Shown: piece after piece, positions 33,680 to 64,000 of the stretch | How positions within the stretch are numbered: the stretch's first letter is position 1 | Layout of the letters: each line of letters starts with the position of its first letter | Assembly: GCA_965112735.1 (NCBI GenBank) | Contig: OZ218956.1 | Span: 186,001-250,000, forward strand | Origin: Phaeosaccion multiseriatum | Lineage: Eukaryota > Protista > Ochrophyta, other classes | Direction: 5' to 3' | Length of the DNA stretch: 64,000 nt | The notes under the pieces: model-generated | Told to the model about the DNA's origin: nothing | Seen by the model: only the letters and a program-made list of their open reading frames with translations | Databases searched by the model: none | Translations under genes and position numbers: made by a program

Positions 33680-34692
33680 ATACGTTATGATCATGTCAAA
33701 GGGTGGGGGGTAGCAGCGACGACGGCGCACAACACAAAGCGGGATGCAGGACCACCGAAGCACCGACCCGCCTTCCTCACTGCCGTATCACCAACTGCCG
33801 CACCGTACCTCCAGTGGAGCGCGGAAGGCGTGGGCCTGCTCCTGCTGCGACTGGTTGGGTCCCGCCCCCCTCCCAAACAGCTGCACCTGCAGCCCTTCCA
33901 GCACCACCTCCTGAATGAAAATCTCCCTGAGGTGCGTGCTCTTCTCCCACGCAGACAGCCGCAATCTCATGACGTGTCTGGCGAAGTCGAGGCCTGCAAG
34001 GAAGGCCGGAGAGGCCGGGGACAGCCCCTCCAGCACCGACATGTCGATGACGTCATCCTTCATCCCCATCCCGCCATCGGAAACCTCTGATGAGGATGGT
34101 GCCTCCACCCTCGGGAAGTGCCAGCCCCTTGCTTGCTTGCGGAGGAGAATCATCTCGCCGAAGGTCATGTTCTGGGCAGAAACCGGAGAGGGGGGGGGTG
34201 GGCGCGTTGGTGAGTGAGTGAGTGAGTGAGTGAGGGAGGGAAGGAAAGAGGGAGGGAGGGAGGGAGGGAAGGAAAGAGGGAGGGAGGGAGGGAGGGAGGG
34301 AGGGAGGGAGGGAGGGAGGGAGGGAGGGAGGGAGAAAGGGAGGGAGGGAGGGAGGGAGGGAGGGAGGGAGGGAAGGAGGGAGGGAAGGAGGGAGGGAAGG
34401 AGGGAGGGAAGGAGGGAGGGAAGGAGGGAAGGAGATCTCATCCGGCCCGCCCAATCCTCTCATGTGCCTGTCACGGCGGTACGCCTGCCATGCCCATACA
34501 CCTCTCACCTCCTCCAGCTCGTCCAACACGTCCTTCCTCCTGCGCAGGGCCGCCCTCCGCATGCTTGACACCTCACGCCGGCTGCCGAAGGCCTGCACAT
34601 ACCTGAGTGGGGGAAGGGGGGGGGATGAAGGTCGGTCTATACCAGAAATCCACTAGGGGGGGTAACAAGCATCGCCACGGAAAGAGACAGAG

Positions 34693-35731: not shown

Positions 35732-36843
35732 GGCCGAAGGCGTGGCCGTGCGCGTGCGTGGGAGCAGCGGGTCCACGTAGAAGCAGAGTCCTTCGATGCT
35801 CACCACGTGCGGAGTGGCCCCGAGGCTGTCCTTATCCCTCATGGCCAGGTCAGACCGGCACGACACCGCCGCCAACACGAGGCCGAAGCTGTGGCCGAAG
35901 ACGCGGTCCTCCACTCGCCAGTGCAGGTCTGTGACTGTGAAGACAAGGTGGTTGATGAGGCTATCCACAATGAAGCCCCACCTCTTGAGGCGCCGTCCGT
36001 AGGTGCCTTCGATGAGGTGCGTCACGTAGTCTGCGTCCCAACGCCGGAACATGGATGCCTTCTTGTAGTAGCGGCTTCAGTCAGAGAGAGAGAGAGAGAG
36101 AGAGAGGCGCAAGAGATAGGAGGCAAGGGGGCAGGGAGGGCGACACGAATGGACGGGATGGGCGATGCAAGTAAACGTGAGACATGAGTCGGATTCCCCT
36201 CAAGAGCTGAGTACCAAGGAAAGGAGTGGCAGTTGGCAGCAGGGCCCGTCCTATCCCGTTCCCATCCCATCTATAGCGCCCACACTCACTCCTCGTTCCA
36301 CTCGTCCTCGTGCGTGCGTCTCCCGCTGAGCATGACTCCATCGAGCGTGGCGATGAAAGAGCCCTGCCTCCATAGCCGGAAGGGGCTCAGCACCGCGCAC
36401 ACGCTGCGCACCGTGCAGCGCTCCACTTTGAGCGGGATACCCCTGTGCATGTACTCGTTCACCAGGGACTCCTGGACCCAGTCGGACACCACCACATCTC
36501 GCAGAAGCAGCTCCGGCCATGAGAAAGACAAGTAGCTCCTCCACGCTGGGCCTGCTGCATCCGTCCCAGGCCACAGCAGCTCCAGCGTGAGCCCCTCGTC
36601 CATACATAACAGCCTCGACTTACGCACCACCCACAGCAAGGCGGCACAGAGCCGTTGCTGAGCCGCAGCCGGACGGAGTTTAAAGAACAGAGCCAGTCCA
36701 AGCAAGATCAAAAGGGGAAAGAGGAGGAGGAGCAGGCCTGCCAGCCGCCACAGAGAGCGCGGCCCAGAGATCAGGGGCAGCACACACGCCGCAGCAGCCA
36801 CAGCCACGCTGGCTGCTGCTTCTCTCCTCGGCAAGCCCGTCAT
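9651..36843 (-). CDS. VPS13: VPS13-family (bridge-like lipid transfer) protein, many exons; exon structure only partly resolved
   Basis: 5' exons 36290-36843, 35414-36074, 34883-35034, 34509-34602, 33809-34171 are phase-consistent and chorein-like ([28 protein letters not shown]). Also [17 protein letters not shown]-like repeats ([64 protein letters not shown]), [16 protein letters not shown], and C-terminal [21 protein letters not shown] and [50 protein letters not shown] (ATG2_C-like). Last exon is inferred to end at 9651. Confidence 0.88.
16111..16322. repeat. 15-bp minisatellite (ctatcctgacaccag) x ~14
   Basis: Direct reading; VPS13 intron. Confidence 0.95.
16888..17236. repeat. (GACA)n intronic microsatellite
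   Basis: Direct reading; VPS13 intron. Confidence 0.95.
23390..23555. repeat. ~15-bp GGCATA(T/G)GGGCAGA tandem repeat
   Basis: Direct reading; VPS13 intron. Confidence 0.9.
24195..24551. repeat. (CA)n-type intronic microsatellite
   Basis: Direct reading. Similar tracts at ~1320, ~11990, ~26150, ~33595 and ~48175. Confidence 0.95.
27500..27768. repeat. 30/42-bp minisatellite (agtagaggggacatgttagttagtacgaca) x ~8
   Basis: Two 42-bp units followed by ~six 30-bp units, in a VPS13 intron. Confidence 0.9.
30880..31290. repeat. ~32-bp minisatellite built on CCATCCACTGCCATCCCCTCCCCTGCCCCTCA
   Basis: Direct reading; VPS13 intron. Confidence 0.9.
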
Positions 36844-36984
36844 TGCATGGACTTTGGGACGCCTAATTACAAAAATAAGAAGAGGGCTGGATACGACACA
36901 GCTTTCCACTGCCATCGCAGCCTTTAACAACCAAAGCACGATACCTTCCTCTTCTCTCTCCTTGGTTCTTGGTTCCTCAATACC
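36844..36984. promoter_or_regulatory. Putative bidirectional promoter/5' UTR region between divergent ATGs (VPS13 and dead GT90 copy)
   Basis: Only ~140 bp separate the minus-strand ATG (36843) and plus-strand ATG (36985). The paralogous spacer is 46551-46678. Confidence 0.55.
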
Positions 36985-37142
36985 ATGTCGACAGCTCTTT
37001 CCTCCTGCCCCGCCGCTGTGCTTGCGAGGCCTCTATGACAAAGAGGCCTCAGATCCCGAGCTGCTTGGAAAGGAGCTGGACAACTCCATGTTCTCAGACC
37101 CGACCTTCGACATAAGGACGACTGCGTGGAGTTCGTCAAGAG
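36985..37142 (+). pseudogene. Dead copy of GT90 exon 1
   Basis: Compared with 46679-46860 it has a +1 T at codon 5 (gctctttcct vs gctcttcct) and a ~24-bp deletion removing LPQKGFLR. No downstream exons follow. Confidence 0.9.
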
Positions 37143-39206
37143 GTGAGTGCCATTGGGCCTCGGTGCGTGTTGCCTAAGTACTGCTGCTGCTGCTGCGGCG
37201 GCGGCTGGTGGTGGTACTGCTTTCTCTTCCTTGTTGATTTCTTGCACTTGCTTGCACGCCCCACAGGCAGCGAGCGGAAGCTTGTTTCTCACACCGGCCG
37301 GCGACGGATCTTTGTTGTGCCCATGCAGGGTGACCCGGCGGGACAAGCTTCTGGCTGGGCTTACTTCCAGCGGGCATGGAGTCAGAGCCTTGAGGGGCTC
37401 GCGGTATGAACACGCAGTGGGCTGGCTGGCTCCCCTTCGCTTCAACACTCGAGCAGGGGCCGCGAGGGACTCCAGACATGTTCGGCTTTCAGCTTCCTTC
37501 CCAGCCCGGCGGCGGTGACAGGCGAGCGACTAGGAGGGGACTGAGGATTTGCCTCCCTTGCCATTCATGGGCGAAGTTTTAAAGGCAGTAAGAAGCAGGT
37601 TTTGTTGTGCCTTAGCTACTTTGCTCCACCTCGGTGTGTCATCCTGCCCAAGAGGGGGAGATGTAGACTGCCGTCCGGCAGCTAGCCCTAAGCCACCAAG
37701 GAACAGCCAAGCTGTGCACAAGGCCACACGCGTCACTGCATCTAGAGGTGTGAAGCGTTACGGAGTGTCATGATGATGCTGAGCCAAGACGGGGAGGCAG
37801 GGACCGCCCCTGAGCGTTCGGCAGCCTGTGGGGCGCTCGAAGATGGGAAGTAGCGAGGAGGGAGGAGGGAGACTCCGGCTCGAGCGACGACATGAGCTCG
37901 ACTGGCTGCACCTCGCCCAGCCAATTCACGCATTCCCACGAAGGCAGGGAAGGGCCTCTCCATTCTGCCGCTCCTCCCAGGAGACAACAGAAGGCAGCCA
38001 GGATGGGGAGGAGGAGCGAGCTGGGGACAGGAGGGACAGGATGGGGAGGAGATGCCCAGTCAAACCGAGCAAGGGACAGGAGGCATATGGGCAAGCCGCT
38101 GCCCGGATTGAGGCGGCTGTACAAGTAGAAGGGACACCAAGCCTCTAGGCCGGCCGGGGCTGCTTCCGACTGGCTGGAGCGGAGCGCCCTGTGGAGCCCT
38201 CACTGGCCACGAGGAAGCTGGGCGGAGGGGGCGGATGGTCACGCGCTCGACACCGCTACAGCCGAGAACGATGGGAGATTGCAGTAGCCCCCCCCCAGGC
38301 AGGCCACAGCTCTTAACTGAAATTTCATTTGGATAAGACATGCTGCATTATGTGGTTTGCTCACCACTCCCACGTTGCTGTCTGTCTACTCTGCCCTATC
38401 CGCACCTACTCCCTAAAACTATTCATTTTTAATTATCAATTAATTACTTCCTTACCGTACCATGAATACGAGATACGCTTGGGCAGCTGCACCTCATCCC
38501 CCGCCCTCTTGTTGGTGGCACGACAGCGGCTGGCTGGGCTGCTCCTCCCCTTGCCCTTCCTCTGCCCACGTGCAGCGGCGGCAGGGCGCGAGGCGGTGTG
38601 CCTGCCTCTGAAGACAGCGAGTGAAGGCAACACTTGCACTGCCCCCCTACGGGCAAGGGGTGGCAGAAAGAGTAGAGCAGGGCATAGCTAGGAGAGAGGT
38701 GCAGGGCACGGCAGGGCAGAGCAGGGCAGAACAGACAGCGGTACATACGAGGCCGAGCACGCACCGCGCCTGCTCGACTCGCTCATTCCCTGGACTCACC
38801 AACTTACTCACCTGCTCGCTCGGCCTGCGAAGTTGCCTGCCGCGTTGATGACGAGGGAGGGGGGAGGTGTGAAGAGTCCAGTCCCGCCGTCGACTGCCAT
38901 CCCCCTGCCCCTCTCTGCCGCCCTCCTCCTCCTCCTCCTCCTCCTCCTCCTCCTCCTCCTCCTCCTCCTCCTCCTCCTCCTCCTCCTCGCTCCTCGCTCC
39001 TCCCCCTCTCCTTAACTCCGCCACCACGCAAGATCGTTGCTCCATGGTGGGGAGAGTGGTAGGGGGCGCCGAGCGTGGGTGTGCTGTAGGCTATAACCAA
39101 AGGGCCTGCTGGCACCGAGGTCTCTTCTACTTCTGCTCACCTAATACTCCAGAAGGGCAGAGCAGAGCACAAGATCGTTGCTCCATGCTGGTGGGGAACT
39201 GTAGTG

Positions 39207-40386
39207 TCGGCTCCAGACTGGCCTAGAAGCCTATGCCCTAGGCCGGCCATTTTCTCTCCCTCTAGGCCGGCGGTTCTAGGCCTAGGCCTCGACCCTGGAT
39301 AAGAATATCTGATTACTGATTACGGCCGGCGCAGCCGGCCTGATCACTGATTATGACCAGCGCCAGCCGGCCTGATTACTGATGATGCGCCAGCCGGGGG
39401 CTGATTACTCATTACGGCCGGGGGGCACACCGGAATCTTGTCCAGGGTCGAAGGGAGGGAGGGAGGGAGGGAGGGAGGGAGGGAGGGAGGGAGGGAGGGA
39501 GGGAAGGAGGGAGAGAGGGAGGGAGGGAGGGAGGGAGGGAGGGAGGGAGGGAGGGAGGGAGAAAGGGAGGGAGGGAGGGAGGGAGGGAGGGAGAAGGGAG
39601 GGAGGGAGGGAGGGAGGGAGGGAGGGAGGGAGGGAGGGAGGAAAGGAGGGAGGGAGCGAGGGAGCGAGGGAGGGAGGGAGGGAGGGACGGAGGGACGGAG
39701 GGAGGGAGGGAGGGAGGGAGGGAGGGAGGGAGGGAGGGCGGGAAGGAGGGAGGGAGGAGGGAGGGAGGGAGGGCAGGAGAGAAGGAGGGAGGGAGGGAGA
39801 AAGGGAGGGAGGGAGGGGAGGGAGGGAGGGAGGGAGGGACGGAGGGAGGGAGGGAGGGAGGGAGGGAGGGAGGGAGGGAGGGAGGGAGGGAGGGAGGGAG
39901 GGAGGGAGGGAGGGAGGGAGGGAGGGAGGGAGGGAGGGAGGGAGGGAGGGAGGGAGGGAGGGAGGGAGGGAGGGAGGGAGGGAGGGAGGGAGGGAGGGAG
40001 GGAGGGAGGGAGGGAGGGAGGGAGGGAGGGAGGCAGGGAGGCAGGGAGGGAGGGAGGGAGGGAGGGAGGGAGGGAGGGAGGGAGGGAGGGAGGGAGGGAG
40101 GGAGGGAGGGAGGGAGGGAGGGAGGGAGGGAGGGAGGGAGGGAGGGAGGGAGGGAGGGAGGGAGGGAGGGAGGGAGGGAGGGAGGGAGGAAGGGAGGGAG
40201 GGAGGTGCGCCAGCCGGGGGCTGATTACTGATTACGGCCGGCGCACACCGTAATCTTGTCCAGGGTCGAAAGGCCTAGGCCGGGGGGGCTGCGCCAAAAA
40301 TAGGCCTAGGCCGTGGGCCTCCGGCCCCCTCTAGGCCGGCCGAATTTCGTCTCTAGGCCTAGGCTTCTAGGCCAGTCTGGGGCCGA
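39207..40386. mobile_element. Non-autonomous TIR DNA transposon (MITE-like), 27-bp TIRs, 6-bp TSD GTAGTG
   Basis: Left TIR tcggctccagactggcctagaagccta (39207-39233) is the reverse complement of 40360-40386 with 1 mismatch. GTAGTG lies at 39201-39206 and 40387-40392. Subterminal CTAGGCC and CTGATTACTGATTACGGCCGG repeats; no transposase ORF. Confidence 0.85.
39453..40204. repeat. (GGGA)n tract of ~750 bp inside the TIR element
   Basis: Direct reading; flanked by ~65-bp direct repeats at ~39386-39452 and ~40207-40270. Confidence 0.95.
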
Positions 40387-41192
40387 GTAGTGTGCAACCA
40401 CCGCTCAGCGCCTCCACCAAGAGGGCCTGGCGCCGAGTATTCTAGTAGATCAGGGCAGAGTAGAGCAGAGCAGGGCAGAGCAGAGCAGAGCAGGGCAGAG
40501 CAGGGCAGGGCAGAGGGCGGAGCAGAGCAAATAGCTACTATACCAAGCTAAACCTTTGCTTCCTCTTTGCTTCCTCCCCCTTCTCCGCTTACCTTCAGGC
40601 GACTCCTGCACTGCCGGTGAGACTTCTCCGGATCCCGCCACAATGGCGCGGCCCCGCCTCAGGACAGAGCACCGCAGGGCAGAGCAAAGCAAGACCGCTT
40701 CGTCCCACTACTCCGCTCACCTTCAGGAGGCTCCGGCACTGCCGGCGAGATTGCTCTCTATCCCACCACAATGGCTCAAGAGCGAGAAGTGCGCAACTCA
40801 GCCTTCCCCCCCCCCCCTCTTTCTCCTTTATGATGCGCCTTCATTCCTTCAGCAGCAGCGCCAACATCGTCAATTCCTGCGCCTCTGCTGTCGTCCCTCG
40901 CCGCCTTCTCCACCTGCTTTTGTCGCTGCCCTCCGTGCATCCCCGGAAGGAGCATGGCAAGGAGGGGGTGGTGCCACTGATACCCGAGTAGTAGCAGCAT
41001 TACCTTATCAAGGAGAAATGATATTATAGAAAAGGGGAAGGAGAAGCGCCTCTCTCCACATTGGGAAAGTGGTTGTCCAGCTTTCCGGCTTGGCAGCAGC
41101 TGTTCCCGCGAGAAGGGAGATCACGCGAGATTGTATCTGCTTCCCCAAAGTCACTTCAGTAGCAGCCTCAGCAAGAAGAAAAGCGGTGGGTG

Positions 41193-44100
41193 ATGGCCGA
41201 CGTACTCGAGCAGCAGCAGCGCAGGACACTCTCCGCCTTCTTCCGCGCCACAGGCGGCCCGACATCCTGGGAAAGGAAGAGCGGATGGAATACCCCAGCA
41301 CCTTTGAAGGACTGGCATGGGGTGACCGTGGAGAATGGCTATGTGGTTGGGCTTGACCTGGGTGATTATTGCAACGGTAATGGGCTCGTAGGTAAGAAGA
41401 TGGTGTGTGAGGAGGGAGGGGGCTGCAAGTCGTCGCTTTCTCCCAAATTGCTTATCACGCTTCTCTGAACTGTTGGCGCGAAGCTGATACCCGGCAATGG
41501 AGGGGTCGAGGCATATGCGAGACGCCTTGCGCCACCGAGAAGAGAAGGGGGGGGAAAGTGCCTTTTACGCCAGGCCCTGGTGTCGTCTGCTGCCCCAGTG
41601 TCGAGTGGCACGCACGAACTAAAAGAACTTTCCTCTCCTCTCTTCGCAGGAAACATTCCGCCGGAGCTTGGCCAGCTCTCCAATCTGAAGGAACTGGGTC
41701 TCAGCAACAACCAGCTCTCTGGTAAGTGGCAGCAACCCTCGGGGCCCACTTGGCTCGATATTGGCGTGACCAAACATCTTTCCTCTCCTCTCTTCGCAGG
41801 AAATATTCCGCCGGAGCTTGGCCAGCTCTCCAATCTGAAGGAACTGGGTCTCAGCAACAACCAGCTCTCTGGTAAGTGGCAGCAACCCTCGGGGCCCACT
41901 TGGCTCGATATTGGCGTGACCAAACATCTTTCCTCTCCTCTTCGCAGGAAACATTCCGCCGGAGCTTGGCCAGCTCTCCAATCTGAAGGAACTGGCTCTC
42001 TACAACAACCAGCTCTCTGGTAAGTGGCAGCAACCCTCGGGGCCCACTTGGCTGGATATTAGCGTGACCAAACATCTTTCCTCTCCTCTCTTCGCAGGAA
42101 ACATTCCGCCGGAGCTTGGCCAGCTCCCCAATCTGACGACACTGTGGCTCAGCTACAACCAGCTCTCTGGTAAGTGGCAGCAACCCTCGGGGCCCACTTG
42201 GCTCGATATTGGCGTGACCAAACATCTTTCCTCTCCTCTCTTCGCAGGAAATATTCCGCCGGAGCTTGGCCAGCTCTCCAATCTGGAGGTACTGGATCTC
42301 GACAACAACCAGCTCTCTGGTAAGTGGCAGCAACCCTCGGGGCCCACTTGGCTGGATATTGCCGTGACCAAGGAAAGATCTTACCTCTCCTCAGCAGGCT
42401 GCATTTGCATGGAGCGGGCAGATGTTTGACTGGGCCCATAGTTGAAAGACGTGTTCCCGGCAACTCAAATCCCTCCTCCCCCCCTCGCTTCTTCTGGGCA
42501 TTGCACGTCTTGGGGCTGGTGCTGGCCTGGCTGTGTGGTTTGGGTGGGGGGGGGGGCTACTTGATCGATTTTGACGTCTTGTCCTGCATGCTTGCCCTAC
42601 CGCTCCCCCCAATTACTCCACTCTCTCTGCCCTTATTATAAAAATACCCATCTGGCTGTCTTCGGGGATCTGACGTAATCTGACTTGAGGAATGTCCTGC
42701 CTCCTCTCCCATGCCGAACGTGCACACCTGCAGAGAAGGAGCCTTCGATAACGGAGCTACGGGCGAGGTGGCAAGCGCGCGTCGCCACGGAGGTAAGGGC
42801 GAGGGTGCATGCAAACAGTCACGGAGTGAGGTGTCGAAGCGCAATGCGCACTGTCGGCGTTCATGGGAGGCGATGGAGGGGGGTATGCCGACAACGACAG
42901 CCAGGCTTACCATTCGAGTGGCAGAAGTTTCTTTAGCACTGACGCGTCCTTCGCGCCTCCTGCCCCTCCTCTTCCTCCTTCACCGCACCGCCCCTGCACC
43001 TCCTCTGAAAGAGTGCCTCACAGGCGGCTGCGAGAGTCTCAAGAGGCTCAGCAGCATGCTCATCTCCAGGAAGAAGACATGAGACGGAGCTCAGAGCTTT
43101 ACGAGCGGCACTGGAAGGGAGAGATGGTGAGCTGGGGGGGCTGAGAGCGGCGCTGGAAGGGAGAGACGGTGAGCTGGGGGGGCTGAGAGCGGCGCTGGAG
43201 GGGAGAGATGGTGAGCTGAGAGCTTTAAGAGGAACGCTTCAAGAACGCAATGACGAAGTGGAAGCGAGAGATGCTGAGCTGGAAGCTTCGAGGTCAAGGC
43301 TGCAAGAGAGAGACGGTGAGGTGGAAGAGAGAGATGGTGAGCTGAGTGCTTTAAGAGCAACGCTTCAAGAAAGAGACGACGAAGTGGAAGCGAGAGATGC
43401 TGAGCTGGAAGCTTCGAGGTCAAGGCTGCAAGAAAGAGACGACGAAGTGGAAGCTCTGAGAGCAAGAGTCGCTGAGCTTGAGGAGCAGGAGGAGCTTCGC
43501 CTTGCTGGAGAGCGCCCACCACCCCCTCCCCAGCAAGAGGGGCGGGACTTTCGCCTCTTCTACACTTCACAGCTGGCGGAGGCGTGTGCTGACTTTGCGG
43601 ATACGGACCTGCTGCTGGGCAGGGGGGGCTTCGGGGCGGTGTATCGAGGACGTGGCGCGGCCTTGGGGCTGGGGAGCGCGCAGGAGGTGGCCGTGAAGAA
43701 GCTCGACGCGGACAGTATGCAGACACTGGCCAACTTCCGGAAAGAGGTGAGGGTGTTGACGCTGTGTCTGCATGCGAACCTCCTGCCGCTGCTGGGCGTC
43801 TGCCTAGACCCGTGCTGCCTGGTGTATCCCCTCATGAGGGGAGGCAGCTTGGACGCGTATCTGCCCGTCCGCGCAACGCTGCAGGGAGGCTCGGAGCGAG
43901 GGCCGCTGTCCGCCCCGAGACGGTTGGGTGTAGCGCTCGGCGTTGCCAGAGCCCTGATGTACCTGCACAGCGAGATGGGCGAGAAGCCCCGAATCATCCA
44001 CCGGGATGTCAAGCCCCACAACATCCTCTTGGAGGAGGCGAGTGAGGGGGACGCCTCCCTGGGAGTGCGTCTGGGGGACGTGGGAATTGCTCGGGTCTCC

Positions 44101-44706
44101 GATACGACGGCAACTGCAGGAACGATGACTGGCATCGCAGGGACTTTCTTGTACATGGACCGGGATTACTTGGGCGGCGCTGAGCCCAGGTGTGAGCATG
44201 ATGTGTACTCTCTGGGCGTGGTGATGCTGGAGCTCGTCATGGGTAGGCTTGTGCGCGGAGAAGATCTGCGCCATGGTGCCAGGCAGCGGCTGTTGTCGGA
44301 CGACGGAGCGACAGCGGTGGCCGATTCAGCCATCTCTTGGACTGGAGGGGCCACGGGTCTGCTTCAGTTGCTCGCAAGCATGGCGTACCGCTGTACCCAG
44401 GACGATCCCGAGGCCAGGCCCGCACTGGATGAGATTGCACGGACCCTGGCCGCCGCATTGGGGGGAGGGGGGGGACGGTCGGCCGCGCGAGTAGAGCCCG
44501 AGCGCGAGCGGCTGTGCATCATATGCATGGACGCAGCCCCCCACACCCGATTCTTGCCATGCCTCCATTCCTGCACCTGCGGAGCCTGTGGAATGAGGTT
44601 GCAGAACGAGCGGCGGCCTTGTCCTCTTTGCAACACGAATATCGAGGCTGTGGAGGAGGGGCGCTTCGATTCAACTTTCGTGCAAGATGGGGGCACGAGG
44701 GGATAG
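41193..44706 (+). CDS. LRR - coiled coil - IRAK/Pelle-like kinase - C3HC4 RING protein, predicted 766 aa
   Basis: Exons 41193-41391 (LRR N-cap TLSAFFRATGGPTSW..W..WHGVTVENGYVVGLDL), five 72-nt phase-1 LRR exons (41650-41721, 41800-41871, 41948-42019, 42098-42169, 42248-42319), 42734-42792 and 43024-44706 join in frame with GT-AG sites (2301 nt). Kinase motifs LGRGGFGAVY, VAVKKL, HRDVKPHNILL, DVGIAR, DVYSLGVVMLEL; RING CIICMD..FLPCLHSCTCGAC..CPLC. The LRR-to-kinase junction is inferred. Confidence 0.75.
41625..42370 (+). repeat. Five tandem 150-bp exon+intron LRR cassettes
   Basis: Unit = 72-nt exon + 78-nt intron (one is 76 nt). Introns are nearly identical (gtaagtggcagcaaccctcggggcccacttggct...ctcttcgcag). 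Confidence 0.97.
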
Positions 44707-45308
44707 GAGGGGAGGAGGCAGGGCTGGTGGTGGTGGTGGTGGTGGTCCCCCTCAGGACGGTTCGTCCCCATCTCCATACATTAATAGTCTTGTTGGATCC
44801 AACCTACGATATAAGGACGAGCCCCGTACACCTGTACACCGATGTTATATCGGGATGTGCGTTGTGCCTTGTAGGGCCCTCACAGCGTCAGGTAAGCGCT
44901 TGGTGTGCTTTGGTGTGCGAAGGGGAGGAGTCTTCCGACGTCACTGGTCTGACGATGAGAGAGAGAGAGAGAGAGAGAGAGGAGGGCTTGTGAGTCAAGT
45001 GCACTGCAGAGGGCCTGCGCTGATTAGGCAGGTTGGATAAGAAGGAGGGAGCACACTCGGGGATTCATTGACATGGGCTGAAATGTCTCCTCTCTCTCTC
45101 TTGTACATCGCTCACTAGGGTCACTCGGCATCGTTTATAAATGTATATACAGTTACTATCTCTGTTCGCCCTCCCGCTGAAAATGTACAGCACAAAACTT
45201 GCAGATGAGCACCACATAAACTTGAGCTTGCCGGGAGGCAGGCCAGCGCTCGCGAGGGCACAGCCCTCAGTGAGCCAAAGCCCTGGGGGGAAGAGGCAGT
45301 GAGTTGAG

Positions 45309-45755
45309 CCCTCAATTGATCCTCACTTCTCAGAGTCAAAACCCTCAATTGATCCTCAGTTCTCAGAGTCAAAACCCTCAATTGATCCTCAGTTCTCAGA
45401 GTCAAAACCCTCAATTGATCCTCAGTCCTCAGAGTCAAAACCCTCAATTGATCCTCAGTTCTCAGAGTCAAAACCCTCAATTGATCCTCAGTTCTCACAG
45501 TCAAAACCCTCAATTGATCCTCAGTTCTCAGAGTCAAAACCCTCAATTGATCCTCAGTTCTCAGAGTCAAAACCCTCAATTGATCCTCAGTCCTCAGAGT
45601 CAAAACCCTCAAGTGATCCTCAGTCCTCATAGGCAAAACCCTCAATTGATCCTCAGTTCTCAGAGTCAAAACCCTCAATTGATCCTCAGTTCTCAGAGTC
45701 AAAACCCTCAATTGATCCTCAGTTCTCAGAGTCAAAGCCCTCAATTGATCCTCAG
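45309..45755. repeat. 33-bp minisatellite, ~13-14 copies
   Basis: Unit ccctcaattgatcctcagttctcagagtcaaaa, near-identical head-to-tail copies with no spacers. Confidence 0.95.
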
Positions 45756-45892: not shown

Positions 45893-46937
45893 AGACGTGA
45901 GTTCCCGAGAGTTGACTACCAAGGGAAAAACGAGAGGCAGTAGGCAGCAGCCCCCGTCCTATCCCGCTCCCACCCCATCGAGAGCACACACACTCACTCC
46001 TCGTTCCACTCGTCCTCGTGCGTGCGTCTCCCGCTGAGCATGACTCCATCGAGCGTGGCGATGAAAGAGCCCTGCCTCCACAGCCGGAAGGGGCTCAGCA
46101 CCGCGCACACGCTGCGCACCGTGCAGCGCTCCACCTTGAGCGGGATGCCCCTGTGCATGTACTTATTCACCAGGGACTCCTGGACCCAGTCGGACACCAC
46201 CACATCTCGCAGAAGCAGCTCCGGCCATGAGAAAGACAAGTAGCTCCTCCACGCTGCGCGTGCTGCATCCGTCCCAGGCCAAAGCAGCTCCAGCGTGAGC
46301 CCCTCGTCCATACATAACAGCCTCGACTTACGCACCACCCACAGCAAGGCGGCACAGAGCCGTTGCTGAGCCGCAGCCGGACGGAGTTTAAAGAACAGAG
46401 CCAGCCCAAGCAAGATCAAAGCGGGGAGGAGGAGGAGGAGCAGGCCTGCCAGTCGCCACAGAGAGTGCAGCCCGAGATCAGGGGCAGCACACACACTGCA
46501 GCAGCCACAGCCACGCTGGCTGCTGCTTCTCTCCTCGGCAAGCCCGTCATTGCATGGACTTTGGGACGCCTAATTACAAAAACAATGAATGTGGATACAT
46601 GGCTTTCCAGTGCCATCGCAGCCTTTAACAACCAAAGCACGATACCTTCCTCTTCTCACAGCTTGGTTCCTCAATACCATGTCGACAGCTCTTCCTCCTG
46701 CCCCGCCACCGTGCTTGCGAGGCCTCTATGACAAAGAGGCCTCAGATCCCGAGCTACTTGGGAAGGAGCTGGACAACTCCATGTTCTCAGACCCGAGCTT
46801 GCCGCAGAAGGGTTTCCTGCGCTTCGACAACAAGGACGACTGCGTGGAGTTCGTCAAGAGGTGAGTATGCCATTGGGCCTCGGTGCGTGTAGCCTAAGTA
46901 CTGCTGCTGCTGCTGTGGCTGGTGGTGGTACTGCTTT
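45893..46937. repeat. Right copy of ~1 kb direct segmental duplication
   Basis: Matches 36180-37223. Confidence 0.95.
45998..46550 (-). pseudogene. Dead copy of VPS13 exon 1
   Basis: Same [13 protein letters not shown] start, but a 1-nt deletion near 46472 (gcagcccgaga vs gcggcccagaga) shifts the frame to a stop after ~44 codons. No exon 2 downstream. Confidence 0.88.
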
Positions 46938-48209
46938 GGCTTGCAAGGCTTAGTTCCCTCGTATTAGTAATCGCTGCCCTCCCCCCCCCCTCCCACAGAC
47001 ACTGCGTGCGCTCGTCCAACCCGTCCTACCCGTGGCTGCAGCAAATCTTCACCACTCTGCTGGACTGGCGCCAGGTGCAGACCCACCTGGTGGAAAAGAT
47101 GCAGTACCTCAACAAGAAGTATCCTCCTCGCCCCACGCCGCAAATCGACGAGAGCCAAAACGTGTACATGTGTGGTGAGTTTATCAGTCAGTCAGGCGAC
47201 TTCGCTCTGTCGTGTGTGGTGAGTCAAGTCAGCCAGGTCAGGTGGCTTCCGCTCTCCAGCAAAGGAGAGCGGGGAGCGAAAAGCACCCAGGGCAGCCTCC
47301 AGCCTCGTCCACGCTGCTCCTGTCGGAGGTCACCGAGAGCCCATGAATACGGTCCTACAACTCGTGGGAATCTCATCTCGTCCCAATCATTCTCCCTCCC
47401 CTCGCTACACAGGCGGCAAGGCGGGCGACAAGAGCTCTCAGGCGGTGCGAGAGGGGGTCAAGCGGCGACTGTCCCTTCCCTTTCATCGCTGCCTGACGCA
47501 GGAGAGCAGTATGAACACCCTGCGCTACCTGTTCTTTCACATGCGCTGCGGCATCTTCGTGATGATCCGCAACAACAAGCTCGTCATGTTCGTGTCCTTC
47601 GCCAACAAGGACTACAAGAACAACTGGGGCAAGAGGTGTGTGTGTGTGTGTGTGTTTGTCTCCACCTCCTTTGTTTCCCCCTCTCTTTCTTCCTTCCTTC
47701 CTTCCCACCTGGGCAAGGACCGACCCCCCCCAACCTTCCTTCCTTCCTTCCTTCCTTCCTTCCTTCCTTCCTTCCTTCCTTCCTTCTCTTTCTTTCTTTC
47801 TTCCTCTCTGCCGCCCATCCTCCACTCTCTGTGCTCGTGTGCAGACTGCGTGTCCCTGCGGATCTGGACCGCTACTACGCCGACAAGCGGGGGTCAGGTT
47901 ATCGTAAGGAGACCATCATCGGCGATGTGGATCAATGGTGGGCCAACGGGAACATCATCTGCAACGAGCACCAGCGCCCAGGTCAGTCGTTCAGTCAGTG
48001 ATTCGGTCAGTCGGTCGGTCAGTCATTCAGTCAGTCGGTCAGTCCTTCAGGCAGGCAGACAGTCATTCTGTCAGTCTGTCAGCTCGTCTTTCAGTCAGTC
48101 AGTCATTCAGTCAGTCAGTCAGTCAGTCAGCCACTTGCTGCACTTGCGCTACTGCCTCACTCGCTCTTCATACACACTCACACACACACACACATACACA
48201 CACATACAT

Positions 48210-48249
<40 letters not shown>

Positions 48250-51082
48250 GCCAGGCGAGACCCGCAGCCAGTATTGGGGCGACCAATTCGTGAGCCCTCT
48301 GCGTGACCTGCTGGAGCAAGCTTGTGAGTCCAGGCAGATGGCGGACTGCGAGTTCTTCATCAACAAGAGGGACTACCCGCATCTCAAGTTCAACCCCGAG
48401 TCTCTGGAGCCCGTGGAGCCCTACGGCTTCATCTATGACAAGGACGACCGCCTGCCCGAGGTATGTGCGTGTGTGTGTGCTGTGTGTGTGTGTGTGTGTG
48501 TGCGCGTGTGTGTGTGTCATTTGTGGATTCGTGTTGGTTGTGGTGCAAAAGGTTTTTCGTTCCTTCTTCGAAGAGTTTGGGTTCATTGCCAAAGCTTGAT
48601 TCGCGAGGTAGTGAGAGAGAACGAGAGAGAGAGAGAGCTAGAGCGGGAGGGAGGAAGGCCCGAAGGGGCTTCTTGAACCCGCGGCACCCACCCACTCACC
48701 CACCCATCCACCCATCCACCCACCCCTCAGGAGGACGTGCCGCTGGGACAGTACAAGTACAAAGCATACACGCCCATTGTAAGCTTCTACTGCAGCGAGC
48801 GCTTCTCTGACATCCCCTTCCCCACCTCCGAGGATTGGGAGGCTGCCACTGGCAAGGTATACCCCAAGACCTTTAAGCATCGCTACGAGAGAGTCTTCTC
48901 CAAACCGCCTGCCGAGGGGGGGGCTGCGAAGGCGGGATCGGAGCAGCAGGGCGAGGGAGCAGGGAAGGGGGAAGGGGCAGGGGAGGAGAATTCCCCTGAG
49001 CAGCAGCAGCCGGGCCCACCCAAGCGAGAGCTGGTGGTGGATGCCCCCCGGGATCTGTTCACAGATGAGAACTTTCGCAAGTTCAAGTGCGCGTGGGAGG
49101 ACAAGGTGGGCAGGCAAGGACGGAGGGAGGGAAGGACGGAGGGAGGGAGGGGATGGGAGGGGGGGAGGGAGGGAGGGAAGGACAGAGGGAGGGAGGGGAT
49201 GGAAGAGAGGGAGGGAGGGAGGGAGGGAGGGAGGGAGGGAGGGAGGGAGAAAAGGGAAGGAAGGAAGGGAAAGAAGAAAGCAAGATCGAGTCAGTCCCCT
49301 TTGAGGCATACCTGAGGCACAGACCGATGACGTCATTCACTGAGAATCGATACTGAACATCGGTATCGACATTTGATGCTTATCATCGTTATCTATCATT
49401 CCACACCGGGTTCGTCTTTTAACATAAGCCCCCTCTTTCGACCCCTTCCTTCCCCCTCCTCGACCCCTCTCAGGTCAACACGGCGTTCTTCCGGGGCACT
49501 GCAACTGGCGGCGGCGTGACGGAGGAGGACAACCAACGGCTCAAGCTGGCGGCTCTGTCGCACCAGTGGAAGGACGACCCCCACCACCACAGCGTGGACA
49601 GTAGGACGGGTGCCCGCGTGCCCTTCCTTGACGCGGCCATCACGGGTTGGAACAAGCGCGACAAGAAGACGGCAAGGGAGCCCATGAAGTGTTTGCATCA
49701 GAGCGCGTTTCCCTTTCAAGGCGGTAAGGAGAATTTCACACCCATCTACGAGCAGGTGAGCGCCTAACTCCGCTGAGGTAGGGAGGAGGGGAGGGAGGGA
49801 GGGAGGGAGGGAGAGAGGGAGAGAGAGCGAGGGAGGGAGGGAGAGGGGGTGAGAGAGGGGGAGAGAGGGGGAGAGAGGTAGCCGCCCCCCGGGGATGGGA
49901 TGGGGGTGGGGTGGGGCTGACCACTAAAGCGTTTCATCGCCTCAGCACAATGCAACTGCACCTTTATTGGAACTTGAACTGCCGCGCTGCACTGCTGTCT
50001 GCTCGTGTGACGTCATCGTCCGCCATCCATCCACCCTTCAGAGCAAGTTCAAGTACGTCATTTATGCAGAGGGACACTGCGCGGCGTGTCGTTACGGCTT
50101 CATGATGCGCCTGGGGAGCGTCATCCTCAAGGCAAGTAGACTCTTCAGAGTGTGAAGAGGAGGCAGAGAAAACAGAGCACAGGAGAGGGCCAGGCTCTGT
50201 CGGCCGTCGTCACACTCTTGCTGGCCTGTATGCCTGCCTGTCTGACTGATTAACTGACTTACTCGCTGTCGAACTGAGTGTCTGACTGTCTGTCTGCCTG
50301 CCTCCCTCCCCACCTGCCAGGTTGAGTCTCGCTGCGTAGCCGACCTGATGTGGTACTTCCCCCTGCTGGAGCCGTGGGTGGACCATGTGCCCGTCAAAGC
50401 CGATTGCTCAGACCTGTCCGAGCGGCTGCAATGGTGCCATGAGAACGACGACAAGTGCAAGGAGATGGCAAGGAGGGCAGGGGAGCTCTATGACAAGTTT
50501 GTGGCCAAGGAGGCGGCACTGGACTACGTGCAGATGGTCAGCCTCGAGATTAGCGAAAAGTAAGTCAGTGAAAAAGTTATGTGTGTCAGTGAATTTGTTG
50601 GCTTCTCCCCCAGTTTCTTCCTCACTGTCTAGTCTAACCCCCCTTCTCATTCCTACTCGGTTCCCGCTTGCCTCCCTCCCTCCAGCTACCGACACCCTCC
50701 GATCTGGTGGGAGCCTCCTCCCCCACAGCAGAGTCAGCCCCTTCCGCCGAAGAACTACAATGGCCCTGCGCACTGCTTCCTAGACCGAGCCACTCGAAAG
50801 ACCAGCCTGTGTTCGAGGTGCAAGGCCGAACAGCTCGAGACGGAGGAGGCCAAGAGGCAAGCGAGCGAGAGGGCCGCGGCAGCAGCAGTGTCGACGGACT
50901 CGGGGACTTTGAACAAGCAGGCCAGGGAGAGGCTCTTGAAGCGGGGTCAAAAGAGGAAGGCGGCGAAGGAGGAGGAGGAGGCTGCGGGGAAGCAGTGGAA
51001 GCGGGAGGGGGGGCAGGGGAAGGAGGAGCAAGCCCCGCAAGCAAGCTCCGGTGGGGGAGCAGCATCACCGGCAGCGGCAGCG

Positions 51083-53610: not shown

Positions 53611-56600
53611 TTGCTGGTCCGACCGCTAAGGCCGTGGGACACCGAGCTACTAACTACCTTGTCGAGCGCCCTCTGCACCCAGCAATGCTCGCACCAACCC
53701 GGCTCGAAGCCGTTGAGGAGCTGCCCCACGCCATCTATGGCCAGGACGGGGTGCGCCCCCACCTTCCTGTCCTGCTGGCCGCCTTGCTTGCTACCTTCCG
53801 CGCCTCCCCCAGAGGACGGGTGCGTGTGACCGTTGGCGGTGCCAACCCCCAAACTGAGCCCCCAACTGCCACTTCCGCTGCCGCTGCCGCCTCGGGCCCG
53901 CTTCCTGCCCGTTGCTGCCCCCCCTTCGCGCCGCTGCTGCTGCTCAGACGTCTGCAAAGTTTCTGAGTCGTCGTCCCCGACAGAGCCGCTGCTACCCGTA
54001 CCACTGCTGCTGCCCCCGCCGTCAGCCGCCCCACTGCTGCTACGCCCCTTGCCCTGCCCGCAGGAGCAGAGCAGATGTGCTCCGCTCAAGTGCAGCGCGA
54101 GGGCCAGCAAGAAGCCGCGACAGCACATCTCCTGCCCCAGCATGTGAGGCAGCACCAACGGGTCCTTGCCGTACCCCTTGCACTGCCCCTTGCCTACATG
54201 CGAGAGGTACCCGTCCTTCTGCATTGCCCTCCGAACCCTGTCATTGCGACGGTCGTTGAAGTCCCTCGCGTGGGCCAAACCCTCCCTCAGAGTGGCCAGG
54301 AGGGCCTCCGTGTGGGGTCTGCCCAAGCTAGAGCTGTTGAGGCGCAGCGTGGCGAAGGCGAGGTGCTGCAGGCGCGGGGCGCAAACCATGAGGGACATTG
54401 CTGCCGCGGGTTCGAAGGCCTTCTTTGTGCTGCCCTCCTTCTTACTCTCCTTCTTTTTCTTCTTCGTCTTTTTGGAATTCTTGACAACCGGGGGCGGCAT
54501 CGCTGCTGCTGCCGCTGCTGCCGCCGCTGTTGCTGCTACTGCTGCTGCTGTTGCTGCTGCTGTTGCTGATGCTGCGGCAGGTGATGGTGGTGCTCTATCA
54601 TCAACTGCTTCGTGGCTGCTCTCGGTGCCAGCTCCATCTCCCAAGGAAGGCCCTCCTCCTGTTGCCTTCACCTTTACAGCTCCGTTCGCTGCTCCCTCCC
54701 CCCCTCCTGCTGCCGCTGCCGCTGCCGCTAACTCTCCCTCTCCCCCTCCAACATCCTCCTCTTCTACCCCCTCTTCCTCTTCCTCCTCCTCCTCCCCCGG
54801 GGCCAGCTCGGAGGCATACCGCTCCACCCTGCCCCACTTTCCAAAGTCCCTGACGAGGCAGCTGCGGTGAAGGTAATCAATGCCCGCCACCCATGTGCTC
54901 CACAGGGCCTCGTCCTTCCTCCTCTCCTCCCCTTCCTCTCCCTCCCCGCCCCCTTCCCCACCCTTCGCCTCACCCTCTTTCTCTCCCCCTCCCTCTCCCT
55001 GCCCCTGCGCGTATGCCTGCCTGTGCAGCCTGGTGAGACCCTCCAGCAGTTCATGCAACGCCTCCAAGGCCATGCGTGCCAGGACCTCCACAGGCTAAGG
55101 GGGTGCAAATGGCAGTGGACGGATACAAGAGGATGGCAGTGGATGGATAAGAGAATGGCAGTGGACGGGGAAGAAGAGGATCGTGAGTACCCCCCTTCCC
55201 GACCTCACGGGCACGTACGTACGATAAGAAACAACGCACCTGGCACACATAGTAACCGAAGAACTCGAGCAGGCTTGGCAGGCAGTCCCTGCAGCCTTCG
55301 AAGCGCTGCAGATACACTTCCACGCAAGTCTGGAACAGCTGCGGGGTCGTGGTGGAGATCCATGAGTCCATGTACAGGGGAAAGGCGAGGGAGTCGCCTG
55401 ACTGAGTGGGCAGGGAGGAGCTGAAGCGGGAGGTGGCCGTGCCATCGCTAGACACATGCACCATGCCGGGGAAGAGTATCTGCCACGGGCACGGAGGGGG
55501 GTACAGGGGTATAGGGGTATAGGGGTATAGGGGTATAGGGGTTTAGGGGTACAGGGATGGGTATGGGGTGGTGAGCGAGCAGAGGGGCATAAAGGGCATG
55601 GGGAAACACAATTTGCAGACACAATTTGAAATGAGGGTCGGAGCGAAAGCGGCGTGAAACCGATGCCAAATGTCCCATGACGCTCGCTACATCTTTTCTG
55701 TACTCCTGCACTTGTGCACGGGCTACTGCCCACCCCACAGGGACCCCACAAACCCCTTATAAAGACTGGACGGAGCGGAAGAAGGACCCGCCAAGCCGTG
55801 TGAAGTGTATAGACTGGAGGGCTACGCACAGAGCGGAGGGAGCGGGAGAAGGAAACGGCCGATCGACTCAGCTCGCTCACTCGCTCATTGCTCCGCTCCT
55901 CGTCTTTTCTCTTTTCTCTCCGCTCGACCCTTACCCTAAGACAACACCATCTTCATCCGCGTCCGATCAACGCACACACACACACAACACGCACGCACGC
56001 ACGCACGCACCCACGCACTTACCGTTTCGAAGAGACACCTGGTGGTGGCGCCATCAAACACGTCTCCGAGACGAGGGTCCACCAGGGCCTCCCTCAGGGT
56101 GGAGATGGCAGCCGAGCGCACGTCCAGGCGAGCGTCGCCCATACATCGGGCGAGCCCCTGCAGCAGCGGCCACCACAGCCGCCGCGCCTTGCTGAACAAG
56201 TCCTCCTCCCCGTGTTGGTGATTCAGCAGCTCCTCGGGCACCCGCCCCAGCCCCAGTCGAGACCCGGCCAGCTTGGCTGAGCTGCTGAGGCTGCTGCTGC
56301 CGCCACTGCTGCTGCTGCTGCTGCTGCTCCCTGTTGTTGCCGGGTCTGGAAAGCTGCTGCCGCTGCTGGTGCTAAAGCTGAGGCTTCTCTCTGTGGCAAG
56401 GGTTGGGACACCATCACCCAAAGTCTTTGAGGCCGGAGCGGCGCCTCTCTCCTCAGCGCCGGCACCATCACCCCCTGCAGCAGCTGACAATGGCGAATCA
56501 CCAACAGGAGCAGTTGGGGATACGGCAGTGATGGTGACCGCGCCGCTGGTCTCACTGCTGCTGGTCATGCTGTCGGTGACAAAGTGGCGCTGCAAGCTAA

Positions 56601-62600: not shown

Positions 62601-64000
62601 GCAGATGAAACGGCACATGAAGCGGCAGATGAGGGGGGGACACACAAACACGGCCACGGGAAAGAGCCGGGCTGAGCAGAGCAGCGTAGCCCAGGGGATG
62701 AGGGAACGAGGGACTCCGAGTCTGACTAGTGCATAGTGAGAAGTGACTAGATGGCCACCCACCCACCCCCCCACCTCGAGGTCGCAGTCGTAGTTGATGA
62801 AGGTCTCCACGAGGGCCTGTGGGGCGGCGCATAGATCTCCAAATACCTCCAACACAAGCATCTTCTGCTCGTGCAGCCCGGTGTCGCTCTCCAGCAGGCG
62901 CAGGAACACACTGGTGATGAACACCTCCATCTCGCTCTTGAAGTGGTCTCGGTGCTTGCGCATGATGAATACGAAGATGCGCAGGCTGACAGACACTAGA
63001 GGTGTGTAGGTGGAGCTGCAGTTGAGGAGCAGGGAGGAGCAGAGCTCTCGCCGCATCGCGTCTACAAAGGTCATGGAGGCTTTAAAGGCCGGCCCGGAAA
63101 CCTCCAGCAGAGCCAAAATCATCTCCAGAGACAGCTGCTTGCATTGGTTCTCCACGGCCTGCACGGTGCCGCCACCCTGTTGGGAGGAGGACGACAAGTG
63201 GTGGGGGAGGGAGTGACGGGTCATGGTGGGGGAGGGAGGAGATGTGCGACCCGTCCTTCCTTCCTTGCTTAAGTCACGCACGTAAAGCAGAGCAAGCTTC
63301 TCAACTGGGGCAGAGCCCGCGACATGATGAGAGGGGCAAGGGGCCGGCCAGAGTGAGCGATGGCATCCCAGCGCTGCACACTCAATCACACTCACTCACT
63401 GATCCACTCACTCACTCCCCCCCTACCTCAATCACTCACTCAATCACTCGCTCAGTTACTCACGCAGTCACTCACTCATGGATCCATCCACTCACCCACT
63501 CACCAACTCACTCACACATTCACCCACTCACCCGCCCATTCCTTACTCAGTTACTCACTCATAGTCACTCACAGTAACTCACTCACGCATCCACCCACTC
63601 ACCCACTCACTAACTCACTCACTCACTCAGTTACTCACTCACAGTCACTCACTCACCCACCCACCCACCCACCCACTCACTCCCTCACTCACTCACTCCC
63701 TCACTCACTCTCTTACTCACTCACTCACTCATTCACTCCCTCACTCACTCTCTCACTCACTCACTCTCTCACTCACTCACTCACTCACTCACTGACTGAC
63801 CCATCCACCCACTCACTCACTCACTCACTCACTCACTCACTCACTCACTCACTCACTCACTCACTCACTGACCTGCATGGGCAGCTCGAACACGTTTGTA
63901 TCGGCCACTGACACCCTGCACAGCGTGAAGAAGCATTCGTGGGCATCGCGGTGGTGCACTGTTGGAAGCTCCCCCTCGCTCTCCCCCTCGCTCTCCCCCT
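52932..64000 (-). CDS. BIG/Sec7-type ARF guanine nucleotide exchange factor (5' end beyond the window)
   Basis: Phase-consistent exons 63873->64000, 62775-63176, 62411-62557, 61438-62067, 61097-61185, 60552-60714, 59874-60023, 59320-59688, 59101-59223, 58717-58908, 58336-58484, 57992-58064, 57401-57705, 56023-57187, 55240-55479, 52932-55094. HUS box FINYDCD, Sec7 [21 protein letters not shown] and [35 protein letters not shown] and [13 protein letters not shown]. Confidence 0.95.
58146..58335. repeat. (ACTG)n intronic microsatellite
   Basis: Direct reading; BIG intron. Confidence 0.9.
63380..63870. repeat. (CACT)n intronic microsatellite
   Basis: Direct reading; BIG intron. Confidence 0.9.

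Follow-up and report, generated by a model that had tools for sequence, protein, structure and literature searches.

Proteins in which a Pelle/IRAK-type kinase and a ubiquitin ligase share a single chain are known, and have been characterized functionally, from land plants only, where such U-box kinases are targets of pathogen effectors. These U-box kinases constitute the plant family PUB-VI/RLCK-IXb (bioRxiv 10.64898/2026.02.10.704836; PMC12803775). For one of its members, PUB33, it has been reported that the kinase and the ligase are both active, that a kinase-dead mutant has a much lower auto-ubiquitination and that the two activities are held in check by the N-terminal and helical regions, self-association of the helical part having been predicted and tested (bioRxiv 10.64898/2026.02.10.704836). 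In Ectocarpus, kinases with leucine-rich repeats (LRRs) are built from type I LRR exons, decayed LRR exons are found within introns (PMC3341825), and residues 15 and 19 of the LRR exons have been reported to be positively selected (Zambounis et al. 2012, PMC3341825; PMC11378527). Finally, LRSAM1 of human and oyster, which combines LRRs, a coiled coil, a SAM domain and a RING, binds and ubiquitinates bacteria (PMC8567218, PMC11863841). Here, we analyze a locus of the ochrophyte Phaeosaccion multiseriatum, located on the plus strand at positions 41193-44706 of a 64-kb window (the whole stretch of DNA under study, from contig OZ218956.1), at which a series of LRR exons precedes the coding sequence of a coiled coil, a receptor-type kinase and a RING-type ubiquitin ligase.

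The DNA of the window is eukaryotic, ~60% G+C and rich in microsatellites. An initial annotation had assembled the locus into one intracellular chain running from the LRRs to the RING. As judged from its domains and their layout, the kinase-RING part is a member of a little-studied, unnamed algal coiled-coil/kinase/RING family, within which a form with LRRs would constitute an additional variant. Regarding the link between the two parts, two separate genes fit the sequence slightly better than one fused protein, and we give an even chance to the reading in which the locus holds two co-oriented genes.

Domains of the kinase-RING protein

The main exon of the kinase-RING part (43070-44706, plus strand) encodes a coiled coil, a kinase, a RING and a C-terminal tail. 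Applied to 43024-44703, Pfam identifies the kinase as PK_Tyr_Ser-Thr (6e-31, 108 bits for a cut-off of 23) and the RING as zf-C3HC4_3 (3e-11, 43.3 bits for a cut-off of 27). The kinase (43612-44448) is a Ser/Thr kinase of the RLK/Pelle/IRAK type, its best matches in the PDB being BAK1 (3e-35), SYMRK, BIK1, SOBIR1, PBL2, CERK1 and BRI1 (1e-35 to 1e-28 for the best four), below which come IRAK1/4 (~1e-23) and, weaker, MLK and TAK1. The G-loop residues G199/G201, K225, the alphaC glutamate E241, H326-R327-D328, N333 and D352/G354 occupy invariant columns of the family alignment, with the VAVK lysine encoded at 43696-43698, the HRD aspartate at 44005-44007 and the DVG aspartate at 44077-44079. The initial annotation had described GxGxxG, VAVK and HRD as intact and DFG as replaced by DVG. 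The residues are indeed intact; as to the replacement, most kinase-RING relatives also have Val in place of the DFG Phe, and DVG is the family norm and no lesion. At the end of the activation segment, the protein reads DRDY versus DPEY in the family, the P being present in at least 90% of the relatives.

The C-terminal C3HC4 RING (44506-44649), which is IAP/MGRN1/MUL1-like, has all eight zinc ligands (C-x2-C...C-x-H...C-x2-C...C-x2-C) and is a predicted ubiquitin ligase (E3), with cIAP2, XIAP, CGRRF1, MGRN1 and MUL1 as its closest solved counterparts. It is followed by an EEGxFxxTF tail, conserved in the family alignment, which extends to the stop codon at 44706. Ahead of the kinase, the coiled coil (43078-43506) comprises ~143 residues in a heptad layout (21 heptads), within which the tandem-repeat program TRF detects internal repeats of 42 nt and 63 nt; Pfam returns only generic coiled-coil matches for this region. 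With the 560-aa open reading frame (ORF) and a 13-sequence alignment as input, AlphaFold2 predicts (mean pLDDT 77) one continuous helix over residues 19-161, readable as 21 heptads without a break, then the kinase fold and the RING, the latter with pLDDT values of 84-92. A hydropathy scan reveals a hydrophilic N-terminus, no signal peptide and no membrane span, the sole hydrophobic 19-mer lying in the kinase N-lobe, which supports the cytosolic location proposed at the outset. Likewise, the initial domain calls (LRR, coiled coil, RLK/Pelle/IRAK-like kinase and C3HC4 RING) are borne out by Pfam, the PDB matches, AlphaFold2 and the exon pattern.

An unnamed algal family

Eleven database clusters combine a kinase with zf-C3HC4_3 and share 32-42% identity with the protein across kinase plus RING. 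Among these relatives are proteins from Ectocarpus fasciculatus (CAM9098093.1) and Chrysoparadoxa australica (CAM9101020.1), a 'RING-type E3 ubiquitin transferase' from Prymnesium parvum and marine metagenome and Logan proteins. The layout seen in the family alignment consists of a coiled coil, a juxta-kinase L..AT..F motif, a kinase with DxG, a RING and the EEGxFxxTF tail, and each of these elements is found here. The N-termini of the relatives are diverse, ranging from ankyrin (Ectocarpus fasciculatus, Chrysoparadoxa) and propeller-like repeats (Prymnesium) to Cys-rich sequence or almost nothing (P0001, P0267). A relative with WD40 and UBA domains is encoded by a single intron-free contig of 3,210 nt as one uninterrupted ORF. 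LRRs occur in none of the 11 recovered kinase-RING relatives.

Further searches were performed with several probes. A word-index protein search with the single sequence returned three kinase-RING relatives and no self-match; the same type of search returned mostly bacterial kinases with the family alignment and no match with the RING-plus-tail region alone. In an exhaustive search of representative proteins, plant tandem multi-kinase models dominate the best 150 matches, and the LRR-bearing matches among these 150 proved to be plant Xa21-like or Capsaspora IRAK-like proteins that have no RING and were set aside. Scans of metagenome and viral contigs yielded only a RING fragment and generic kinases. 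Our literature search brought up no paper that describes the algal kinase-RING family or its LRR form. The initial statement that the architecture is not described can accordingly be kept in part: it agrees with the literature search, but public databases contain the coiled-coil/kinase/RING core from several algae, and biochemical work exists on the plant U-box counterpart.

Leucine-rich repeat cassettes

Upstream of the kinase-RING part, TRF reports on the plus strand a tandem array of five copies of a 150-bp unit (41628-42371), one unit corresponding to a 72-nt LRR exon plus an intron of 76-78 nt. The LRR exons (41650-41721, 41800-41871, 41948-42019, 42098-42169 and 42248-42319) are 72 nt each, all begin and end in phase 1, and all five fit the published 'type I LRR exon' pattern GxxPxxLxxxxxLxxLxLxxNxLx with one repeat per exon, in keeping with the Ectocarpus-like organization that had been recognized initially. 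The assessment of the LRR domain drew on the exons, the published consensus and a read-through ORF; Pfam LRR_4, LRR_8 and LRR_1 match the read-through ORF containing two LRR exons with E values of 1e-6 to 3e-5, no stretch being individually significant. The array is preceded by exon 1 (41193-41391, plus strand), which comprises the start codon, a hydrophilic N-terminus, a cap-like segment and a first irregular LRR, and which ends at the phase-1 donor TAG/GTAAGA. Pfam finds no family match in this exon, described earlier as an N-cap, even at E 10.

Among the five LRR exons, 12 columns are variable, 11 of them with non-synonymous changes, at unit residues 11, 14, 15, 17, 19 and 20; residues 14, 15, 17, 19 and 20 are x positions of LxxLxLxxN. 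By comparison, only 4 of 82 aligned columns differ among introns 1-4 of the array, and units 1 and 4 have seven differences in their exons and none in their introns. The LRR variation thus appears concentrated on the predicted binding face and, from these patterns, the cassettes look functional. After the fifth cassette, a decayed sixth LRR unit (42398-42430, plus strand) begins at a pyrimidine-rich acceptor; if this acceptor is used, a stop is reached 10 codons on and the LRR gene ends with QLSGCICMERADV before the stop codon, giving a protein of 196 aa. A copy of the repeat family D4, 60% identical, is located at 42220-42519.

Gene models and splice sites

The initial annotation joined eight segments (41193-41391, 41650-41721, 41800-41871, 41948-42019, 42098-42169, 42248-42319, 42734-42792 and 43024-44706). 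Their borders are GT-AG throughout and, concatenated, they form 2301 nt encoding 766 aa with no internal stop, so that the claim of eight segments joining in frame stands. However, three other models match the sequence equally well as this one (model A: exon 1, the five LRR exons, 42734-42792 and 43024-44706). In model B, the donor of the fifth LRR exon at 42319 is joined to a phase-1 acceptor at 43070, giving 731 aa. In model C, translation starts at ATG 42711 and, through the donor after 42792 and the acceptor at 43070, yields an uninterrupted stand-alone coiled-coil/kinase/RING protein of 572 aa, similar in layout to P0001 and P0267. In model D, the fifth LRR exon is spliced to the acceptor at 42398, and the reading frame passes through the decayed sixth cassette to the stop at 42430, producing the 196-aa LRR-only protein.

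The frame of the main exon is open from 43009 to the stop at 44706, and its first in-frame ATG encodes model residue 438, a Met within the kinase. With no ATG ahead of the kinase, this ORF needs a first exon borrowed from upstream. The phase-1 acceptor at 43070 fits two kinds of donors, namely those of exon 1 and of all LRR exons, which are all strong phase-1 sites (GTAAGT, GTAAGA), and the phase-1 donor GAG/GTAAGG that ends what may be the first coding exon of a separate kinase-RING gene (42711-42792, plus strand, 82 nt, starting with ATG 42711). The latter exon overlaps 'exon 7' of the initial annotation (42734-42792) in a different frame, and codon-usage scoring rates both frames of 42733-42792 as equal and does not separate them. 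The 46 nt at 43024-43069, i.e., the start of 'exon 8' of the initial annotation, score as non-coding in the model A frame. In exon 7, 'SITELRARW' resembles the 'ETELRALRA' with which the coiled coil starts; the resemblance comes down to a match of 8 nt, is within chance and was discarded. Splice sites were compared by pyrimidine content and consensus matching only. By this measure, the acceptor at 42398 has a pyrimidine content of 0.76 versus 0.47-0.59 for the three distal acceptors, and both acceptors of model A have the lowest values (0.53 and 0.47).

AT-rich, TATA-like elements provide a second type of evidence. The first (41016-41033, plus strand, core ATTATAGAAA at 41023) lies 160-177 nt before ATG 41193 and is a candidate promoter element of the LRR gene. 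The second (42632-42647, plus strand) contains TATAAAAATA at 42637-42646, a motif placed 65 nt before ATG 42711, and lies 202 nt past the stop at 42430 and 64-79 nt before ATG 42711; located within 'intron 6' of the initial annotation, it could be a promoter or a 3'-end signal. The third (45134-45149, plus strand), 428 nt past the stop codon, is a candidate 3'-end signal. The TATAAAAATA motif is unique in the window, and shuffled sequences are expected to contain none; the core ATTATARAAA occurs without mismatch at only two sites of the window, 41023 and 42635. There are eight AT-rich clusters in the 64 kb. Three of them punctuate the locus (41016, 42632 and 45134), and the two long multi-exon genes of the minus strand (15.3-36.8 kb and 52.9-63.4 kb) are free of them, the argument resting here on the small sample of introns within the window.

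Sequencing reads and paralogues

Public sequencing runs containing the locus give no informative RNA joint, their contigs being unspliced DNA. Indeed, four runs of one sample behave as DNA, exons, introns and flanks being covered at even depth, and 42331-43155 is spanned by a DNA contig in unspliced form. One metatranscriptome matched 5% of the sampled words and contains only ~97%-identical coiled-coil and kinase pieces. Its contigs at 43908-44229 and 44323-44473 are ~97% identical to the kinase, with five synonymous and five non-synonymous differences, and derive from a related strain or a paralogue; DNA may occur in such libraries. A 71-nt metatranscriptome contig joins 41986, midway through an LRR exon, to 42096, at the start of a second one, and does so out of frame; it does not represent a splice and is probably an assembly path through the repeats or a different paralogue. 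Moreover, the DNA contigs reveal a second variant at 43578-43705 and 43901-43953, where the depth of the other letters is comparable to that of the window sequence, and one DNA contig departs upstream of 43578 into a different, still kinase-like coding sequence. It follows from this variant and from the contig diverging at 43578 that at least one close kinase paralogue exists elsewhere in the genome.

One chain or two genes

The reading with two co-oriented genes would assign to a first gene (41193 to ~42430) a small cytosolic LRR protein made of Ectocarpus-type 72-nt cassettes with variable binding-face codons, the decayed sixth cassette being its end. A second gene, with a promoter near 42635, ATG 42711, the 42792>43070 splice and the stop at 44706, would encode a stand-alone coiled-coil/kinase/RING protein of ~572 aa. 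Since the strongest acceptor is that at 42398, a TATA-like element follows and the 42711/42793/43070 model yields a complete stand-alone protein, splicing of the fifth LRR exon toward the stop after 42398 with a separately transcribed kinase-RING gene is, on the features of the sequence, at least as likely as a fusion. In addition, the kinase, the RING and all catalytic residues are intact in the second gene, and some relatives have only a short N-terminus (P0001, P0267).

Several observations weigh against two genes. ATG 42711 comes after another ATG, at 42692, that is out of frame, and the start context is weak at either site. Only tens of bases would separate the two genes, and the 10-residue tail would make a poor C-terminal cap for the LRRs. 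It may also be that introns simply tolerate AT-rich clusters. Furthermore, two routes keep the fused reading in frame as well; relatives carry N-terminal repeats, either ankyrin or, on one 3.2-kb contig, WD40; and the LRR-kinases of Ectocarpus share the same exon type (PMC3341825).

The strongest alternative is that the locus is one gene encoding one chain in at least one isoform, either through 42319>43070 (731 aa) or through 42734-42792 and 43024 (766 aa), and we consider it a plausible, although somewhat doubtful, explanation. In detail, the LRRs would bind a ligand or partner, the coiled coil would dimerize, and the kinase and the RING would signal or tag a target; such a fused form could coexist with a shorter isoform produced from an internal promoter. 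Both routes are GT-AG, in frame and stop-free, the LRR and kinase-RING parts lie on the same strand with 300-750 nt between them, and the large ORF, having no in-frame ATG before the kinase, needs a foreign first exon. With phase 1 common to the LRR donors and the acceptor at 43070, an in-frame chimera of LRRs, coiled coil, kinase and RING could arise from a read-through transcript. A fused chain would also be in line with the ankyrin and WD40 scaffolds at the N-terminus of kinase-RING relatives, with the type I exons of the Ectocarpus LRR-kinases and the decayed LRR exons within introns of that alga (PMC3341825), with the LRR variation on the predicted binding face and with the upstream ATG 42692, which weakens model C. 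On the other hand, the nearest and strongest acceptor after the fifth LRR exon leads to a stop, a self-sufficient two-exon kinase-RING model exists, chance would have to account for a rare TATA-like AT-rich element within an intron, LRRs are found in 0 of 11 recovered kinase-RING relatives, and the public runs, behaving as DNA, contain no RNA joint. Model A suffers further from the poor coding statistics at the 43024 boundary and from its pyrimidine-poor acceptors. For the single chain proposed initially, which is a candidate reading, in-frame routes exist, but the nearby acceptor is the strongest and leads to a stop, and the stand-alone model is complete.

It is very improbable that a recent duplication produced the kinase-RING ORF as an untranslated or decaying copy which lost its first exon in a young duplicated 9.7-kb segment, leaving only the LRR gene, or neither gene, functional: the missing in-frame ATG before the kinase, the 95%-identical 1-kb repeats flanking the segment, DRDY at a site where at least 90% of relatives have P (DPEY) and the close paralogue (at least one) seen in DNA contigs at comparable read depth would fit such a relic, but 560 codons remain open in 60% G+C DNA with all catalytic and zinc-binding residues kept, and the ~97%-identical metatranscriptome kinase pieces have equal numbers (five each) of synonymous and non-synonymous differences, with the proviso that DNA is possible in such libraries.

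Flanking sequences

The locus is bracketed by direct repeats of ~1 kb (36220-37222 and 45928-46942), 84-97% identical in blocks and offset by ~9.7 kb. They are the sole basis for the 'accessory island' label given to the locus at first. Each copy contains one minus-strand ORF (217 aa and 166 aa, respectively) with no Pfam match, and a VPS13 N-terminal exon proposed in these duplicated flanks found no support from Pfam. Just downstream of the locus, a 33-bp tandem repeat (45309-45755; 13.5 copies, 96% matches) has open frames on both strands. Long microsatellites of the GGGA/GGGAGGGA type (39388-40205, 34113-34536 and 49124-49869) create spurious Gly/Arg/Glu-rich ORFs, and GTCA-type tracts at 47958-48157 likewise create spurious ORFs. 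Farther along, on the minus strand (55936-63395), lie ORFs of a BIG/Sec7-family exchange factor, for which an Atlas feature search with 62550-63395 points to HUS-domain clusters (0.96).

Possible function and significance

In the two-gene reading, a mechanism can be proposed for the kinase-RING protein. IAP-type C-terminal RINGs act as dimers. Together with the biochemistry of PUB33, this leads us to infer dimerization through the coiled coil, trans-autophosphorylation and a phosphorylation-gated RING. By analogy with PUB33, the long helix would pair two chains, the paired kinases would phosphorylate each other, and the kinase and RING activities would gate one another. The dimeric RING would then recruit a ubiquitin-conjugating enzyme (E2) and ubiquitinate its own chain or bound partners. 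If attached, the LRR domain could select the partner or relieve auto-inhibition.

The locus and its database relatives reveal a RING-based family, parallel to the plant U-box kinases, in ochrophyte and haptophyte algae, the N-terminal scaffolds of which are interchangeable (ankyrin, WD40 and possibly LRR). This has a bearing on the age of the kinase-plus-E3 module and on the way in which algae connect recognition with signalling. It is conceivable, but unlikely, that the LRRs are spliced through 42319>43070 into a cytosolic receptor for pathogens or damage, with a fast-diversifying face of exon-shuffled LRRs, a dimeric state and a response by phosphorylation and ubiquitination, and that this receptor belongs to a large modular family, in this alga, of sensor-kinase-E3 immune receptors made as single chains. 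An immune role is a speculation drawn from the diversifying LRR face and from analogy with LRSAM1, plant RLCKs and IRAK-Pellino. If the LRR form is real, the locus would encode a compact candidate for an algal intracellular receptor and would be a clean case of phase-1 cassette exons added to a signalling gene; otherwise, an ordinary LRR gene stands beside an ordinary family member.

Comparison with known systems

In comparison with animal IRAK kinases and their ligases Pellino and TRAF6, there is no death domain here, and kinase and ligase are located in a single polypeptide. Toll/IL-1 signalling follows the logic of an IRAK-family kinase that works together with a RING ligase; a fused receptor, if true, would combine the jobs of LRSAM1 and of IRAK-Pellino in one polypeptide. 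With LRSAM1, the fused form would share a cytosolic N-terminal LRR domain, a coiled coil and a C-terminal RING presumed to be of the same Pfam family, the likeness being one of layout only; LRSAM1 has a SAM domain, whereas here there is no SAM match and a kinase occupies that place. Without a SAM domain, the protein falls outside LRSAM1. With respect to plant LRR receptor kinases, the kinase is nearest to BAK1, SYMRK and BIK1, but the lack of a signal peptide and of a membrane span places the protein outside the plant LRR-RLKs.

The LRR part compares most directly with the LRR-ROCO and 'LRR-kinase type I' genes of Ectocarpus, with which it shares 72-nt, 24-residue cassettes, consensus and boundaries (PMC3341825; PMC11378527). 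As in these type I LRR-exon genes, there is variation on the binding face, decayed units stand beside live ones, and the repeats permit exon skipping. For an LRR-kinase on one transcript, as in Ectocarpus, in-frame routes exist here, as do competing models; the Ectocarpus LRR papers (PMC3341825; PMC11378527) do not mention a RING or a ubiquitin ligase on LRR-kinases. With the unnamed algal/protist family, the coiled coil, kinase, RING and tail are common, the LRR form having no counterpart among the recovered relatives.

The plant PUB-VI/RLCK-IXb proteins (Arabidopsis PUB32-35 and PUB50-53) have the same order, in which a long helix is followed by a kinase of the RLK/Pelle type, then a linker and, at the C-terminus, a domain that recruits an E2, and their helical region directly before the RLCK-type kinase is present here too. 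The U-box (PF04564) is replaced by a C3HC4 RING, Pfam finding no U-box. Likewise, the USP domain of the plant proteins has no Usp match in exon 1, the coiled-coil part or the 560-aa ORF, and the N-terminus is instead short or, if fused, an LRR domain. Having neither U-box nor USP domain, the protein falls outside PUB-VI/RLCK-IXb. Nevertheless, the likeness to plant coiled-coil/Pelle-kinase/U-box proteins pointed out initially is supported by two agreeing approaches: according to language-model features, the nearest Atlas clusters are haptophyte kinase-plus-RING and plant kinase-plus-U-box proteins (0.93-0.97), and a search with the predicted shape gives as best matches PUB33-like U-box kinases, covering the helix end, the kinase and the RING/U-box. 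A green-algal 'PUB33-like' protein of Tetraselmis (P0004), which also has DVG, is among the best sequence matches. By analogy, among PUB-VI, LRR-RLK and LRSAM1, it is the PUB-VI/RLCK-IXb kinases that the kinase-RING protein would most resemble in its function.

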